Shown: positions 452-63,575 of the stretch, piece after piece
Position numbering within the stretch: position 1 is the first letter of the stretch
Layout of the letters: the number at the start of each line of letters is the position of its first letter
NCBI RefSeq assembly: GCF_036588685.1
Contig: NC_086382.1
Span: 1,612,001 to 1,676,000 of the forward strand
DNA length: 64,000 nucleotides
Direction: 5' to 3'
Source of the DNA: Mytilus trossulus
Lineage: Eukaryota
The notes under the pieces: generated by a model
Seen by the model: only the letters and a program-made list of their open reading frames with translations
The model's database searches: none
Told to the model about the DNA's origin: nothing
Made by a program: the position numbers and the translations under genes

Positions 452-2800
452 AACTTGCCCCAAAGCAAATTAGAGTAAACAGCGTAAAGTAAGTTTAATA
501 AGTATCCTCAATATGAAACTGATTTTTGTAATATTTTATTTGAATTCTCAATGATCACTTATCATATGAGAACCTCCTGCAAAACCAATAGTTACCATAC
601 ATGTATATAGTTTCAAGTCTAAAAGCATTGAAAAACATCATCCGTTGGGCAATGCACGTAAATTATACGATCGAGTTCCATGGCACATGTCAAAGCTCAA
701 GGGTGCCATGTGGAGCTGAATATAGTTACACTTTTTGGAGCTTCACGGTCACCTGAGGTTAATATGAATGGTTTAATGGGATTCGCTTGCTTGATCTTTA
801 GTTTTTTAATGTTGTATTTTATATGCTCTTGGGGTTTTTTTTGTTTTGTTTTTTGCTACGATATTGTCAGTTTGTTTTCGACTTATAAGTTTGATTTTTG
901 TTTGTATCTGTTTCGTATACGTAACCACGTCTTTCTTTAATACAAAAGATCTGTCCTTAATAAAAATAATTGTTCAGCTAAATTATCACCGTGATATTAA
1001 TAGGTGCCATAATAATTGAGATTCCTGTACTTTGAATGGTGAATTAACTGTAGGAGCTAAGACATGTATTTTGAGTATGCAACACTCCACCTTATGAGAT
1101 CGTTCAATGTAATGAATAAATTTACGTGTTTTTTTTTAACGACATTAACCACCAAAGACCGTCTTGCACGAACGGTACCGAATTGAGAAAGTTACAGGGA
1201 AAATTCATGTATATTACAAATTGTGTAGAACAGCACTTTTCATACGTTCATTGTAAAAAGTAAAAACACAAAAATACTTCAACTCCAAGGAAAATTCAAA
1301 AAGGAAAGTACAAAATCAAAAGGCAAAAATCAAAAGTTCAAACACATCAAACGAATGGATAACAACTGTCATATTCCTGACTTGGTACAGGCATTTTCTA
1401 ATGTAGAAAATGGTGGATTGAACCTGGTTTTATAGCTAGCTAAACCTCTCACTTGTATGACAGTCGCATCAAATTCCATTACATTGTCAACGATGCATTA
1501 ACAAAACAAACATACTCATTTTTATTTTTTGAATAGTCCAGGAGTAATTAAGACAGAAATACACAAGAGAGGTGGAATGGACGAAGAAGCTTATCAAAAA
1601 GTATGTTTATAATAAGAAATATGTTCATGGGCGAAACAGTTGGACAAGTTAGTCGGATTCGTGTGTGTTTTGGCTGAAAGATTTACTTCCGTTGCCCACG
1701 CTGTAAATTATATGGTGGGGTAGCATAATGAATGTTTAAGGTCAAACTTAATTGATAAAACATTTACGAAAATTGAAAAGACATTTCAATATAAAGTGAA
1801 TATGACCTTTACTATTTTCATATATTCACGGTCATTAATGGAATATGCCACAAAGCGTCTTTTTCTTACTTCAAAGAATGGTTATCATATTATTATTATT
1901 CATTCATATCATACATAAACTATATAAAAGAGGACGACCAATTGATATTATGGAACGGGGGTGGGGTGGGGGCATGAGTTCAGGAAGACTTTATTATTAA
2001 AAAGTATTCATCTGTTGCTACGCTTACTTTTTTCACCATGTCTTTTGCAAAATTTTCCTCCCTCTCCAGAAACTAAATTGGTCGTCTCTATACTTTAGTA
2101 TATACATGAGGGTCTAGATGGAAGGGTGTCATTCAATTTTTAAACAATTGAACCCTATTTTTAATTTGATTTTAACATTTGGACACCAAATTATTCTCTG
2201 TTCCTTATTTTTTTTTGTCCTTTTTTCTGTATTAATTTTTTGCTCTAATTCCATATTTAGCCACGGTATACTTGGGGACAAGACACACTATTTTTGCCCT
2301 CCCGTTTTACCAAAATCTGTGTTTTTTTTTTCTTTTTCTGTTGAATTAGTTCCAAATTTCCCATCTTCAGCGGTCACTGATATATACATGTATGATTAAT
2401 TCTACACCGTCGGTCCATCGTTATCTATTTTGTAAACCCCATCCAATGCACAGGCACTTGTCTCAATTTTTTTCCCCCTATATACCTTAATATAACGTTA
2501 TATTAAGGTATATGGGAATTTTTGTTTTGAGACAAGTGCCTGTGATCCAATGACTGAGTATTGTTCTTATTTAAAAAAGAATGAAGATTTTTCATATCTT
2601 CATTTGAAAAAATCCTAATGTTGTGACGCTTTTATTCTCAGTTTTTGGAAAGGACAAAGATTACACATGCTTTAGGAAGACCCGGAGAAGTACAGGAAGT
2701 AGCCGGTATGATTGCATTCTTGGCTTCTGATGATTCCTCCTTTATTACGGGAACACAAGTACCTATTGATGGTGGAAGACATTGCATTTGTCCTCGGTGA
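452..2800 (+). CDS. Classical SDR (FabG/3-oxoacyl-ACP reductase-like oxidoreductase), paralogue 1; last 3 exons only, 5' part upstream of the window
   Basis: AG/GT-bounded exons 452-488, 1537-1600 and 2642-2800 splice in frame to [86 protein letters not shown]. IRVNxVxPG and FITGxxxxxDGG are SDR C-terminal motifs. Exon sizes (37, 64, 159) equal those of paralogue 2. AATAAA at 2875-2880. Confidence 0.93.
1365..1464 (-). ncRNA. Twister-ribozyme-like motif (P5-type permutation) within a dispersed repeat (about 1250-1520)
   Basis: Minus strand reads ACUGUCAUA-caaguga-GA-GGU-uUAGCUAGCUA..AACCAGGUU-CAA-UCC-ACC-AUUUUCU-acauu-AGAAAAU-G-CCUG-U-ACC-AA-GU-CAGG-aa-UAUGACAGU. This gives a 9-bp P5, 7-bp P3, P4 CCUG/CAGG, T1 ACC/GGU and T2 AC/GU. 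P2 is weak. Confidence 0.6.
2449..2544. mobile_element. 96-bp MITE with 8-bp TSD (hAT-like)
   Basis: 18-bp TIRs CACAGGCACTTGTCTCAA / TTGAGACAAGTGCCTGTG. ATCCAATG is duplicated at 2441-2448 and 2545-2552. Central perfect 34-bp palindrome at 2480-2513. Confidence 0.85.
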
Positions 2801-5007: not shown

Positions 5008-7072
5008 TTAATTTGAATTTTTTAATTTGTCTTCTAATTCTAATATTTTATTATTCTTTTCCTTATTTTCATGTTCTAGGTTGTTGATTCTATTTTCAAG
5101 TCTGCTGAAATTTTCCATGATCCCAGCGTCTCCAGAAGTTTCACTGCTGTTTTCCATTTGTGACTGCTTTTCCACATCTGAAATTATAAGTTAGCGCATT
5201 ACATTGTACCCCTTCAACAATGAAATCCGCCAGACTATGGCTGTACCATAAGCATACAGTCAATTTCATTTTACTACGTTTTGTACCGTTTTACCTCATA
5301 TCATTTTTTTTTCGGTTTACGGTACCGTGACATATATGTACGAAGTGCCACGGAGACAAACATTCACCAAACTCCAACTAAGGAAGACATTAGCAATATA
5401 TAAACACATCATAGATACCAGGACTATAAATTTAGTTTAGTTTAAACATATTTTATTTACTCAAAGTAAAATGGATTGGACACAAGTAAGCCATACTTAT
5501 GAAGTCCGCTCCGAATGACAATAATTTACAATACAATATTAATATGAGCATGCAATATCAAAATAAACAACATTTTACGAGTCTATCAATTGAGAAGAAA
5601 AAAAATTAGTATGTACGCCAGACGCGCGTTTCGTCTACGAGAGACTCATCAGTGACGCTCGAATCCAAAAAGTTAAAATGGCCAAACAAAGTACGAGGTT
5701 GAAGAGCAGTGAATACAAAAATTCCTGAAAGTTTTGCCAAATACAGCTAAGGTAATCTATGCCGGAGGTAGAAAAGCCTTAGTATTTCAAAAAATTAAAA
5801 AAATTGTAAACAGCAAATTTATAAATATAACCATATCAATGACAATTCATGACAGCACAAAAAGTGCTAACTACTGGGCTTGTGATACCCGCGGGGAAAT
5901 ACATTTCCACCAGCAGTGGCATCGACCCATTGGTTGTAAATAAACTCGTCATTTAAGGTCATAGTACGGCTTGTAACAATAATAACAAAGCATACTGTAT
6001 AGTCATCTAAAAAATGGCCCCGGGCCCGACATGAAAGATGTGAAACAATTAAAATAAGAAAACTCACGGCCTTATTTGATAACAATACAATTAGCGAAAA
6101 ACAGATATGACAGACACGAGCTAACGACAACCACTGATACCAGGCTCCTGACTTTGGACAGGCACAGAAAGAATGTTGGGATTAAAAATAGTTTGAGCGC
6201 TCACTATGACAATGGTATAGCAGCACAACATAAAGAACAAACTGTGAAAAGCATTTCCAAAAGGTTTAACTCGTTAGAAACGCAAACAGATACTACCATA
6301 TAAATCATTAAACACAAAGCATCGATATAGGAGTACTCGCAGTTGCTTGAAAATATTTAAAAAGCCAATAACAACTAATAAATTAATCATGTTCTCTCCG
6401 ACTGTTTTTGTTTGTTTTGATTGTGTTCTCTATGACTCTCTCCATCTTATTGGCATTCTTGTAAATCGCACTAGTTCAATGTATTTTTGAGTTATTTGGA
6501 CTGTATATTTTGGTATTTTCAGTATTTGTGTTTACAGTGACATATATGCAGTTATTTTTGCAACTGGTGAAATAATATAAAGACTAACTTTCATTTAAGG
6601 CTGTACAATAAGGGCTACCATTGATTGGAGTTACAAACATTGTACGCAAGTCACGTTGTTTTAATAATAATAAACAATTACATTTAAAAAGTATACAAAT
6701 GTTTCTTGACAGGTTTCACTCACCTCTTCGGCCTTTGGTCGTACCATTCACGGCCCTTTTTAAGAGAAAAACCGACCGTTTCAGTTCTAAAATCTCTTTC
6801 ACCATCAATTCCTCCTTGGTCATAGTTTCACCGGTTAACAGAAACATTTCGGTCTCCAAAAAATGAATAGCTTCTGACAGTTCACTATTACTTTTTCCAT
6901 CATCGGCATTCTGTGGGTTGGCTCCGTGTAGCTCTCCGGTGTCCACGATTTTAGCATTAGTCCCTGAACGTAAGGCTCTGAAAAGCTCCCTTATAGTTAT
7001 TTTGTCACAAGTCACAGAACAAACGAAGGAAATGACACAAATGGTGAATAATAAATGACGTTTCATTATCAT
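5008..7072 (-). CDS. Uncharacterised secreted coiled-coil protein, 2 exons, about 172 aa
   Basis: Exon 1 (7072-6724) encodes a signal peptide (MIMKRHLLFTICVISFVCSVTC) and ends at a G|GTGAGT donor. Exon 2 (5177-5008) follows TTTCAG in matching phase 1 and reads DVEKQSQMENSSETSGDAGIMENFSRLENRINNLEHENKEKNNKILELEDKLKNSN*, with a heptad L/I pattern. Minus-strand AATAAA at 4924-4919. Confidence 0.75.
5401..5952 (-). mobile_element. Near-complete retrozyme-like (hammerhead-carrying, non-coding) monomer, interrupted by a 174-bp insert
   Basis: Ends repeat TAAAC(A/T)C(A/G)TCAT at 5401 and 5941. Contains an intact hammerhead. Homologous to 7235-7550, 14473-14715, 31619-31742 and 54279-54495. About 366 nt without the insert at 5437-5610. 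Confidence 0.7.
5615..5658 (-). ncRNA. Minimal type I hammerhead ribozyme (intact core)
   Basis: GCGUCA CUGAUGA GUCU-CUCGU-AGAC GAAA C-GCGC-G UC UGGCGU: stem I GCGUCA/UGGCGU, 4-bp stem II, palindromic stem III (ACGCGCGU), GUC triplet. Confidence 0.85.
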
Positions 7073-7270: not shown

Positions 7271-7314
7271 ACGCCAGACGCGCGTTTCGTCTACACAAGA
7301 CTGATCAGTGACGC
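7271..7314 (-). ncRNA. Hammerhead motif with core mutation (CUGAUCA), probably inactive; in a retrozyme-like fragment about 7235-7550
   Basis: Same scaffold as 5615-5658, but the conserved G8 is C. Confidence 0.7.
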
Positions 7315-8394: not shown

Positions 8395-16797
<8,403 letters not shown>

Positions 16798-22299: not shown

Positions 22300-23757
22300 G
22301 AGGGGATTAAAACAACATATAAACATACACCGGACCTAAACATCTTCCCCCGTCAATTACTTATAGAAATAAGTATCGTAATATTATCCACGAATCACTC
22401 CGTACCTACTGTTCAAAATGGATAAAACAGGGAAAAAGCTGACAAAAAATCTTTTGACTCTTTTTTTGTATTCAGTAATGAACATAGTTGATATACGTAT
22501 TCAGCATTGTAAAGAACATTTTACACTTAATAATAACCACAATAAACCTATTTCTCGTATCAAACATAAACTAAAAGAACTAACCAAGGATTTTTTTTTG
22601 TCCCGGCAGATAAAGCTGCTAATAATATTATTATTGTTTGACGCAACTTTTACATTGAGGTTTTACAAAAAGAAATCACCAATTCACCAACATTACAACT
22701 GACACCATTTTCAGAAAACGACATCTGTAACAAACATACACTTTTAGCTACCGCTTTACAAGCAGAACAAAAAACAATGAAAGTCCCAACTACATTTTGT
22801 ATGTATTGGCTTCCGAAGCTAAACAAAACACCTTAAGAATATAGATTTATTTCGTCTTCAAGCCATTGTTCAACTACTAAATTATCTATTCTTCTTACCA
22901 GCACACTTGGTACAATCAAAAACCTGAAAATAAATTGTTGAAGTAAGGCCTTCAAAAACAGTGGAATTAATTACTTTTGGAATGTCAAGAACTCGTTGGA
23001 AGTACTTGATAAATTGCATGCTTATATTGGTGATTTTGAATCTGATAAAAGTTTGGATTTTTCTACCCTGTATACCATATTGCCTCCCATTCTCATTAAA
23101 AAAAGTTCCCACACCTAATATGGGCATTTAAAAAGTCAGAATGTAAATATTTATGGTAAAACTCTTTTGGGTCATTTTTTAGTAGCAATTAACAAAACAA
23201 AAACTATGTCAATTGGACATGCTTTGATTTTATATCTGCACTTGCATCTTTACTGGTTAACATTTTTGTTCGCTTTAGAGATGCCGCAAATCGTCAGGTT
23301 ATCGGAATTCTTATGGGGACTAACTGTGCACCACTTATTGCGGACCTGTTTTTGTATTGCTATGAGTTGACAAAAATCAGCAAAGACCCATCGAAACAAC
23401 ATCTGATACACATATTTAATAATACTTTTAGATATTTGGATGATATTTTGGCTCTAAATAATGACGACTTCAGTATAAATACTAAAGAAATGTATCCTGT
23501 TGAACTTACTTTAAATAAAGCTAATACTAACAATGACCACTGCCCCTTTCTCGATCTTGATATCTTTATCATTAACGGAAAGCTCAATACTAAAATTTAT
23601 GATCAAAGAGATGATTTCTCATTTCCTATGATCGTTAATTATCCATTTTTAGAAGATGCCGTTCACTTGTCACCATCTTACGGTGTTTATATATCTCAAC
23701 TTGTAAGATTCGCTCGTGAATGTAAAAATGTTTTATATTTTAACGAGAGAAATTTCT
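22300..23757 (+). mobile_element. Decayed Penelope-like retroelement, reverse transcriptase region (frameshifts and stops; 3' truncated; left boundary approximate)
   Basis: Translated fragments VPADKAANNI, YWLPKL, DFSTLYT, MGTNCAPLIADLFLYCYE, FRYLDDI, PFLDL and YGVYISQLVRFAR. Confidence 0.85.
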
Positions 23758-23852: not shown

Positions 23853-26158
23853 TATAAAAAAGAAGATGTGGTATGATTGCCAATAAGACAACTATCCACA
23901 AAATACCAAAATGACACAAACATTAACAACTATAGGTCACCGTACGGCCTTCAACAATGAGCAAAGCCCATACCGCATAGTCAGCTATAAAAGGCCCCGA
24001 TAAGACAATGTAAAACAATTCAAACGAGAAAATTACCTTTATTTATTTATTTATGTAAAAAAATGAACGAAAAACAAATGTGTAACACATAAACAAACGA
24101 CAACCACTGCATTACAGGCTCCTGACTTGGGACAGGCACATACATAAATAATGTGGTGGGGTTAAACATGTTAGTGGGATCCCAACCCTCCCCTAACCTT
24201 GGACAGTGGTATAACAGTACAACATAAGAACGAACTATAAAAATCAGTTGAAAAAGGCTTAACTCACCAGATAGACAAAAAATACAAGTGGACGTGGCCG
24301 GGTACTTATACATCCCGACACAAAAAGACACAATGAATAGATCTGAGAGTACTCGCAGTTATCTGACAGCTAGTTCAAAGCCACTAACAACTAATAAAAA
24401 AATCATGCCTCTAAGACTGAACAATCAATCCGTACACATCCAACATACAATGGATTTAGTGTAAAGACGCCATACACAGCCAGAGAAAAACATGACCATG
24501 TGCAATGCCAAGTTACAGGTATCAACAGATTGTAGATCCATGAAAATGTATATATGTATATAACATACTAGTAATATTTAGTTAGCTTTTAATCTACTGA
24601 TAACAACATCAATATTTATACCAATAAAAACAATATCCAATGATCTTATTACAGTGTTGAATAGGTAACCTTTTATAATAAGTTTATTTAAAGGAGCAAC
24701 AAGTTTACATGGATCATTTCCGGGCACGGTTAACAACATTTCCGTATAAATGAGGATGTGCTATCCCGTTTGAAATAAGTTTTTTACAGGTACAACCAAA
24801 CTTCAAAACCAAATCTTTATATCTATGGAAAAATTTAGTAAAGGTTTTAAGTAATTTATGGTTTAATAATTTACCAGTAATACATAGGTTGCGTTCGTTA
24901 AAATCAAAAACGTCACAACAGACACGGGCATAGCGAACAAGTTGTGAAATATAAACACCGTAAGATGGTGCCAAAGGAACATCACCATCGAAAAATCGAA
25001 ATTTAACAATAGGGAATGAAAAATGGTCTCTTTTGTCGTAAATTTTAGTGTGTAGTTTCCCGTTTAAAACCGAAATATCTAAATCCAGGAAAGGACAGTT
25101 ATTACCGAATACATTTAATTTATTTTAAGTGAGTTTCTTGGGATAAATTTCAGCAGTATATTGAGAAAATTGTTGATTATTTAACGAAAAAATATCATCA
25201 AGATAACGGTAAGTGTTGTTGAATTTATCAATTAAATGCAATTTCGACGGATCTTTACTGAGTTTAGTCATAAACTGTAATTCGTAACAGTACAAAAACA
25301 AGTCTGCTATTAAAGGGGCACAATTAGTGCCCATGGGGATACCTACAATCTGTCGATAGATTTTGTTGCCGAAAAGTACGTAAATATTATCAAGGAGAAT
25401 TTAACAGCTTCAATCATTTCATTACACCTCAAGTAAGTATAAATTATCTAGAATATTTACCTTTCTCATTAGAGAAGAAGGCTTTAAATGAGTTGCAGCA
25501 AATATATCTACATTCAGCTTTACCAAACGACCATTTAATTAAATAGGAAAACTGTTGTTTAATAAGATAGTGTGGAAGTGTAGTGTAAAGAGAAGAAAAA
25601 TCAAAACTATTAACAGAATCAAAAGGACCATCAGAAGCCCGTAATTTATCTTAAACATCCAAAGATTTTTTTACACTCCAAAAATGGTTTATACCACTAT
25701 GTTCATATATTTTATTACAATAGTTTATGATAAGCTCTTTAATAGTAGTTAATGAACTAGTTAAGAGCACTGACAGATAACACTAGAACACTTACTAGAG
25801 GCCGAGATGAAACGATATTTAAATGGTTTTTTGTGTAGTTTAGGTAGCCAATACATAGTAGGAACCTTCAAATGTTCAGAAGAAGCCTTAAGCTTTGATG
25901 TGGTTGTGATATGCTTGTTTACTATATTACTCTCTGTGAAGCGGATGGACTTGAATGTAGATGAATTTAAAATTTCATTCTTAAGAACGTCCGTGTAGTA
26001 TTTACGTCATACCACAACCACATTGTTGGCTGCTTTGTCGGCCGGTACAAACACAAACCGCTTTGAAAATATTTGAAGTTAATTTCTTATTTTGGAAATA
26101 GGTGTATTATGTACTCTTTTATTTACTTCTAAATTATTATCTTATCTACCACATTTAA
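23853..26158 (-). mobile_element. 5'-truncated Penelope-like retroelement: RT pseudogene (about 26140-24578) plus about 0.7-kb 3' non-coding region
   Basis: Minus-strand FVFVPADKAANN, YWLPKLHK, FDFSSLYTTLPH, GIPMGTNCAPLIADLFLYCYE, YRYLDDI, PFLDL and SYGVYISQLVRYAR. The frame ends ...RLKAN* at 24578 with no C-terminal GIY-YIG. Inserted precisely within a minisatellite unit (GATAG|CCCTACATG). Confidence 0.85.
24104..24209 (-). ncRNA. Twister-ribozyme-like motif (P5-type permutation) in the 3' region of the Penelope-like element
   Basis: CCACUG..AGGUU-AGGG-GA-GGG-uuGGGAUCCC-acu-AACAUGUU-UAA-CCCC-ACC-ACAU..AUGU-G-CCUG-U-CCC-AA-GU-CAGG-AGCCU..CAGUGG. All twister blocks are present: UAA cleavage loop, P2, T1 CCC/GGG, T2 AC/GU, P3, P4, P5. 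Confidence 0.7.

Positions 26159-27792: not shown

Positions 27793-63575
<35,783 letters not shown>

Follow-up and report, generated by a model that had tools for sequence, protein, structure and literature searches.

A predicted type-P5 twister-like RNA domain, with palindromes in the place of P1, carried in the 3' untranslated regions of Naiad-type Penelope-like retroelements of Mytilus trossulus

What is the short structured repeat that recurs throughout the genome of Mytilus trossulus, and what might its RNA do? We addressed this question in a 64,000-nt stretch of contig NC_086382.1 (positions 1,612,001 to 1,676,000 of assembly GCF_036588685.1; referred to below as the window), which is AT-rich (GC 31-41%) and belongs to an assembly of 1.3 Gb in 541 contigs. 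An earlier note, made from the letters of the window, had listed ten copies of a dispersed repeat, among them the copy at 24104-24209 on the minus strand that is the focus here, and had proposed that they hide a permuted twister-like ribozyme in which helix P1 is replaced by palindromes. By the coding content of the better-preserved copies, the repeat is the 3' untranslated region (3' UTR) domain of Naiad-type Penelope-like retroelements. We consider it quite probable that this conserved RNA domain adopts a type-P5 twister fold with palindromes in the place of P1, and that intact copies would cut themselves; the copy at 24104-24209 itself is the relic of a dead, 5'-truncated element.

To describe the fold, we built a covariance model (referred to as R1) from a seed of four sequences that align in register, containing the helices P5, P2, P3 and P4 and deliberately leaving out the two pseudoknots T1 and T2; MAFFT applied to mixed subfamilies shifted the GA-NNN motif by one base, and all further sequences were realigned by Infernal. 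The sample of the element's own genome amounted to ~350 kb, and in ~286 kb of this genome R1 gave 39 matches, in whose alignment 83.6% of the cells are paired (71.5% after shuffling, 31-44% with slid partners) and 21 of the 26 pairs vary on both sides. The independent set comprised 80 marine-metagenome contigs encoding relatives of the element's reverse transcriptase (RT) that are 37-100% identical to it. Here R1 found 34 matches on the sense strand, each downstream of the RT match, besides three weak others, and 90.4% of the cells in their alignment are paired (60.9% shuffled, 28-48% slid), with 24 of the 26 pairs varying on both sides and a covariation score of 0.685 vs. 0.182. Further, the unmodelled pseudoknots T1 and T2 are paired in 90% of cells compared with 75% after shuffling, a value that none of 2000 shuffles attained. 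The pair types observed are listed below.

P2: GGGG/CCCC, GGGA/UCCC, GGGC/GCCC, GGGU/ACCC, GUGU/ACAC, GACA/UGUC, GAGU/ACUC
P4: CCUG/CAGG, ACCG/CGGU, GCAG/CUGC, GCUG/CAGC, CAGG/CCUG
T1: GGG/CCC, AGG/CCU, GGA/UCC, AGA/UCU, GUG/CAC, GGU/ACC, GGU/GCC
T2: GC/GU, AC/GU, CC/GG, UC/GG, GC/GC

The bases of the core, i.e., GA after P2', U/C-AA before P2, and U-NNN-AAG in loop L4, are essentially invariant, and single-sequence minimum-free-energy folds recover P5, P2, P3 and P4. In the focal copy the domain can be read part by part as follows, all on the minus strand.

24103-24210 (-): the complete twister-like domain with its outer closing stem ACCACUG/CAGUGGU; R1 match at 24108-24207, Rfam Twister-P5 16.8 bits at 24121-24193
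24195-24199 (-): P5 5' strand AGGUU, with its partner AGCCU at 24116-24120; all nine P5 pairs vary on both sides
24189-24193 (-): P2' GGG (24191-24193) followed by GA, with G24190 as the predicted catalytic guanine; aligns to GAG of the Rfam consensus
24186-24188 (-): T1 strand GGG, with its partner CCC at 24129-24131; T1 pair types GC, AU and UA
24175-24184 (-): palindrome 1, UGGGAUCCCA, at the expected position of the P1 3' strand; palindromes are found in 39 of 44 distinct linkers
24165-24172 (-): palindrome 2, AACAUGUU, adjoining the cleavage site; relatives have AAACGUUU, UAAACAUGUUUA, AAACUAGUUU and UAAACCGGUUUA in the equivalent position
24163-24164 (-): predicted scissile bond U24164^A24163, followed by A24162; placed by the UAA of relative L133 as aligned to Rfam Twister-P5, with UAA or CAA in nearly all copies
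24156-24161 (-): P2 CCCC (24158-24161) and T2 strand AC (24156-24157; GC in the subfamily consensus), both with pair-type variation
24137-24155 (-): P3 hairpin; four of four modelled P3 pairs with compensatory changes
24121-24136 (-): P4 CCUG/CAGG with loop L4 UCCCAAGU, which holds one T1 strand (24129-24131), and T2 strand at 24125-24126; aligns to CGGUCcCAAGCCCG of Rfam Twister-P5, P4 being 96-97% paired with several pair types

The GA after P2' is kept in 36 of 37 aligned relatives. What the earlier note had read from the window copies is borne out by these alignments: the block order P5 - P2' - GA-NNN - linker - U/C-AA - P2 - P3 - P4/L4 - P5' is as it had described, the T1 variation CCC/GGG, ACC/GGU and CCU/AGG is present and is extended by UCC/GGA, UCU/AGA and CAC/GUG in relatives, and P5 and P3, said to differ among subfamilies and yet to pair, show compensatory changes in both alignments. 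The cuts that it had predicted between U24164 and A24163 and, in a second copy, between C1420 and A1419 fall at the N^AA position of twister ribozymes. P2, which it had called short or imperfect, is imperfect in the subfamily of the copies at 1365, 50703 and 63105 and a perfect helix of 4 bp in the consensus of the other three subfamilies.

How closely does this fold correspond to the known twister families? Rfam run at gathering thresholds reported nothing in the window, and the twister models searched over the whole window gave no match at E <= 10. When a 201-nt stretch around the focal copy was compared with 4,227 Rfam families, Twister-P5 (RF02684) was the best of them at 16.8 bits, below its gathering score. 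The most divergent relative, L133, whose RT is 37% identical and whose domain is without P3, scores 35.3 bits with the same model (E 0.0012) and aligns to its consensus nearly base for base. Compared with RF02684 (clan CL00120), our RNA has the same order P2' - GAGNN - 20-25 nt - UAA - P2 - GC - (P3) - P4 with L4 UCCCAAGY - P5, in which the P5-permuted helices covary, as well as both pseudoknots, T1 joining L4 to the three bases after GA and T2 joining it to the two bases after P2, and the conserved core bases. It differs in having two palindromes instead of a P1 hairpin in cis, in scoring under the gathering threshold, in a T2 that is usually G-U/C-G or C-G/C-G, in a long P5 closing stem and, L133 apart, a P3 that are always present, and in its host, an animal retroelement with ~10^5 copies. 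Judged from sequence, the RNA is built like a circularly permuted twister ribozyme of type P5, with covariation of all helices and both pseudoknots, an invariant core and Twister-P5 as best match, in agreement with the permuted fold proposed earlier. Because all defining structural features are present except the cis P1 and a score above threshold, it is a variant of the twister class and not a formal Rfam member. In natural twisters that have been tested, it is tolerated that P1 is lost, that P2 and P4 contain mismatches, and that extra sequence is inserted upstream of the cleavage site (PMC11662667).

In the place of P1, the linker between GANNN and UAA measures 20-25 nt and so is as long as the P1 hairpin of canonical P5-type twisters. 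A cis P1 was ruled out, as the two ends of the linker, next to GANNN and next to UAA, are non-complementary in every subfamily. Instead, 39 of 44 distinct linkers contain a perfect palindrome of at least 8 nt starting 0-2 nt past GANNN, compared with 7% of shuffled linkers, so that the palindromes pointed out in the earlier note are genuine and greatly exceed chance expectation. They comprise 27 different sequences, with the centre dinucleotides AU, CG, UA and GC (all four that are self-complementary), and a second palindrome, of the form (U)AAAC-NN-GUUU(A), reaches to or over the U of the cleavage site. Since complementarity is kept up to the centre, which is useless to a hairpin, and the sequences are not conserved, which speaks against a protein site, the simplest reading is pairing with a second copy; most likely, the palindromes would pair with a copy on another RNA or with a second copy in a tandem transcript. 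Computed gains from dimer formation are -8 to -20 kcal/mol, only moderately beyond the -8 to -10 kcal/mol that shuffled sequences give on average.

The element that carries the domain was recognised from longer copies. In thirty copies of the 24104 subfamily the 3' end is exactly the same, ~240 nt downstream of the motif, and the 5' ends vary, a pattern that indicates 5'-truncated retroelements with the motif on the sense strand. In the window, such an element can be delimited as follows.

23853-26141 (-): 5'-truncated, decayed Naiad-type element of subfamily A, with its fixed 3' end at 23853 (from 30 aligned copies) and ~2.3 kb in common with loci L051 and L052
24581-26006 (-): RT remnants in frame-shifted pieces (tblastn with the L053 open reading frame: five pieces, 70-82% identity), containing no open reading frame of at least 150 amino acids (aa)

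Better-preserved copies retain an open frame of 482-488 aa in which RT motifs can be recognised, and public data contain more than 3,400 RT homologs, of which the longer ones P0093 and P0114 extend the N-terminus by 225-280 aa. The combination of a DKA motif, instead of DKG, with a CxC motif is diagnostic of the Naiad clade of Penelope-like elements (Craig et al., PMC8557442). We found the PADKA motif (PADKAANN) in the RTs of L053, L055, P0093 and P0114, and the CxC motif as CSC in P0114 and as U-D-C in L055, where the position of the first Cys is a UGA codon. In L053, a TGA lies exactly eight residues after PADKA, just ahead of the 482-aa frame. In L055, a metagenome contig with a 100% identical RT, the frame continues upstream through several TGA codons, past U-D-C, KR-rich and GIY..YIG-like blocks. 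Its putative endonuclease region, which shows upstream of the RT the blocks LIYVV...IQYVGQT, R..H, E and N, was recognised by eye only, Pfam giving no match on the pieces between UGA codons, and a PDB sequence search with the RT also returned no match. Between the RT stop and the twister domain, hairpins resembling the selenocysteine insertion sequence family SECIS_1 occur at 10 loci with 24.8-33.1 bits (threshold 35); a search for them in the window copy detected none.

SECIS_1-like hairpins: L113:945-1005, L079:3720-3786, L060:3095-3159, L072:3969-4031, L051:6081-6147, L054:1422-1488 (-)

Because of the RT with PADKA, the UGA codons lying in frame, and the SECIS-like elements, we assign the element to the Naiads. 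Some clam Naiads have selenocysteine at conserved Cys positions, including the one eight residues after DKA, and Naiads dominate bivalve genomes, where automated annotation catches mostly their abundant 3' ends (PMC8557442). Similarly, the elements found here probably encode selenocysteine, as reported for clams. They share with the published Naiads the DKA-type RT, the CxC region, a putative N-terminal endonuclease-like block, UGA codons at conserved Cys positions, a very high copy number in bivalve-type genomes and abundant 5'-truncated 3' ends; the twister-fold domain found here is, in contrast, absent from that description (PMC8557442). The same report describes Naiads as lacking canonical hammerheads and names no other ribozyme, twister being unmentioned; our own hammerhead search of L051, L053, L054 and 18 metagenome loci gave no match at E <= 10. 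The domain lies on the sense strand 150-900 nt past the RT stop and ~250-350 nt ahead of the fixed 3' end of the element. A tRNA- or SINE-type (short interspersed nuclear element) origin was ruled out, the copies being 3' parts of RT-encoding elements. What the earlier note had called a dispersed repeat family is indeed a repeat, and its main biological context, the 3' UTR of a Naiad, had escaped that reading.

Along with high copy number and frequent 5' truncation, a short duplication at the terminus is a further trait of Naiads found here. At the 3' end of a C-type copy (L023:1004-1055), RNA-seq joints go back 30-51 nt with few extra letters, suggesting that many copies carry such a short terminal duplication, or "tail", as described for Penelope-like elements. 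Three other observations concern these elements or their surroundings. A second RT relic lies at 22642-23753 on the plus strand of the window, 58-64% identical to the L053 open reading frame and directed towards the 3' end at 23853; it could be a nested insertion or the inverted arrangement typical of Penelope-like elements. At L053:2330-2900, directly upstream of a truncated Naiad copy, a tandem array of ~94-bp units yields spurious open frames of 139 aa. The RT homologs P0098 and P0117 are filed at NCBI under metagenome-assembled genomes of Candidatus Thiodiazotropha (lucinid clam symbionts), and probably represent host DNA binned into bacterial genomes.

The ten stretches of the window are mutually alignable, are all recovered by the profile search or the covariance model, and belong to one very abundant repeat superfamily. 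Eight of them are found by R1 at E < 1, and nhmmer adds 35668-35773 (+) and 10310-10362 (-), the latter being the 3' half, and the only part recovered, of a copy that had been reported as split over 10301-10580 (-).

1363-1465 (-): subfamily B copy with T1 GGU/ACC, palindrome UAGCUAGCUA and an imperfect P2; R1 35.3 bits
6136-6218 (-): 5'-truncated, decayed copy (6131-6203 in the earlier note); R1 20.1 bits
10310-10362 (-): 3' half of a copy interrupted by an insertion of ~225 nt; nhmmer E 8e-06 and alignment
13201-13293 (-): decayed subfamily D copy with palindrome UUGAGAUCUCAA; R1 49.7 bits
24108-24207 (-): R1 match to the focal copy, subfamily A; 58.4 bits, E 3.7e-15
28423-28517 (+): decayed subfamily C copy with T1 AGG/CCU; R1 61.9 bits
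35668-35773 (+): subfamily B copy with a mutated P4; nhmmer E 7.4e-18
50467-50566 (-): decayed subfamily A copy; R1 43.9 bits
50700-50798 (-): subfamily B2 copy with palindrome UGGCAUGCCA; R1 13.5 bits, nhmmer E 7e-21
63107-63201 (+): decayed subfamily B copy; R1 29.2 bits

In random 10-kb samples of the genome we counted ~1 copy per 10-15 kb, which corresponds to roughly 10^5 copies genome-wide. First-look searches gave at least 3,142 genome matches for the subfamily of 24104-24209 (-), the best being 96-98% identical, and 561,893 rough candidates for R1. Contig C1 alone has more than 100 copies of one young subfamily with the same R1 score (107.2 bits). Besides equal-scoring copies, the C-type family has dozens of intact 482-aa open frames (e.g., with the domain at L053:5549-5643), and it looks recently or currently active.

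If the fold is functional, intact copies would cut themselves between U/C and AA (24164/24163 in the focal copy), and this would trim read-through or tandem transcripts, the latter from pseudo-long-terminal-repeat (pseudo-LTR) arrangements, to unit length, as has been suggested for the hammerheads of other Penelope-like elements. Pairing of the palindromes would in turn make folding or cleavage depend on two copies being present. Four RNA-seq runs of 2026 with the same species label cover one C-type and one A-type copy. Reads map to both strands of both copies and their depth rises towards the 3' ends of the elements, as is expected because many truncated copies sit inside other transcripts.

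Several observations weigh against a self-cleaving twister. No copy reaches the Twister-P5 gathering score of 37.6 bits, the best values being 16.8 in the window and 24.9 genome-wide. A large group of relatives has T1 GGU/UCC, with U-U as its third pair, and a U-C or A-C mismatch in P2; P2 is poor in subfamily B; and an unpaired linker of 20-25 nt adjoins the active site. The four RNA-seq runs contain no pile-up of molecule ends at the predicted sites and no dip at bin resolution, a weak test given that the libraries are not end-specific, that passive transcripts of dead copies dominate, and that the threshold was one fifth of the depth. Such points would suit a structured 3' UTR element, derived from or resembling a twister and no longer cleaving, that the RT recognises to start target-primed reverse transcription: the domain lies near the 3' end of every copy, RNA-seq gives no sign of cleavage, P1 is missing, and some groups have an imperfect P2 and T1. 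We nevertheless regard this explanation as unlikely, as recognition by the RT has no need for invariant catalytic bases (GA, N-AA and the AAG of L4) while all helices vary across RTs only 37% identical, and the imperfections are exactly those that tested twisters tolerate (PMC11662667). Far less probable still is a chance resemblance to twister in a transposon whose conservation merely reflects young copies. The sub-threshold Rfam scores and the 96-98% identity of many copies within subfamilies would agree with it, but compensatory changes occur in all six helices, both unmodelled pseudoknots included, across subfamilies and metagenome relatives (37-55% RT identity), and the controls with slid partners fall to ~40% paired.

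Given a type-P5 twister fold, what the palindromes do admits two readings, neither of which we hold more than tentatively or place above the other. As P1 is known to be dispensable, a dimer is not required for catalysis, and the domain may be an ordinary monomeric twister without P1 (PMC11662667), its palindromes forming tiny hairpins, a site for a dimeric protein, a symmetric site at the DNA level, or a means of pairing genomes for template switching; that computed dimers gain only moderately over shuffled sequences fits this view. Palindromes that are perfect to the centre (AU, CG, UA, GC) are, however, not what a hairpin selects, 27 different sequences speak against a sequence-specific protein site, and the palindromes occupy the exact place and length (20-25 nt) of the canonical P5-type P1 hairpin. 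The other possibility, which we put forward with equal caution, is that the Naiad twister is a dimer-dependent ribozyme, in which two intermolecular helices of similar length (8-12 bp) would connect two active sites and take over the part of P1. If so, cleavage, or the pairing of genomes for template switching, would take place only when two copies meet, whether within a tandem pseudo-LTR transcript or as two separate element RNAs, and dimerisation of the RNA would be tied to the tandem insertions typical of Penelope-like elements.

Among the papers listed by the literature searches, none described a twister in a Naiad or another Penelope-like element; a large published survey of twisters covered type P1 only, and a published search for new twister permutations yielded no candidates. 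What comes closest is the twister variant that the Perere-3 retrotransposon of Schistosoma carries at its 5' end, which is likewise a twister-class ribozyme co-transcribed with a high-copy animal retrotransposon. It is of type P1, with P1 formed partly from the target-site duplication, and its cleavage has been shown, whereas the domain described here, whose cleavage is predicted, sits in the 3' UTR of a Penelope-like element, has the P5 permutation and lacks P1.

Lunse, Weinberg and Breaker in 2017 (cited in PMC10085705) and Cervera and de la Pena in 2014 reportedly described minimal hammerheads of type I in Penelope-like elements, which undergo cleavage as dimers. As in those hammerheads, a self-cleaving motif class, predicted in our case, lies in the terminal repeat or 3' region of a Penelope-like element, one helix is reduced with a palindrome in its place that would let two copies pair, and tandem copies give two ribozymes per transcript. 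Unlike them, the Naiad domain belongs to the twister class and has two palindromes rather than one palindromic loop, and its dimer is a prediction. By analogy, the replacement of P1 by palindromes would mirror the dimeric hammerheads and provide a second, independent case in which to ask if dimer-gated cleavage is a general strategy of Penelope-like elements.

In many invertebrates Naiads outnumber every other kind of Penelope-like element, and they have been reported to stand apart from the other clades in lacking a ribozyme (PMC8557442). If the present reading is true, all Penelope-like clades would carry a self-cleaving motif, of two unrelated classes, which would suggest that their life cycle requires a step of RNA processing. 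The number of twister-like sequences would also grow by ~10^5 for each bivalve-type genome, and in the scans made here not one of these attained the Rfam gathering score.

The window also contains matches to type-I hammerheads at 33 bits (gathering score 34), whose helix III is short, as is typical of the dimer-type hammerheads found in Penelope-like elements and retrozymes. Five of them form a tandem array, and three more lie elsewhere.

54419-54462, 56205-56248, 57991-58034, 59777-59820 and 61561-61604 (+): hammerhead tandem array with a period of ~1,786 bp; 33 bits
5615-5658 (-), 31648-31691 (+) and 7271-7314 (-): further hammerhead matches; 33 bits

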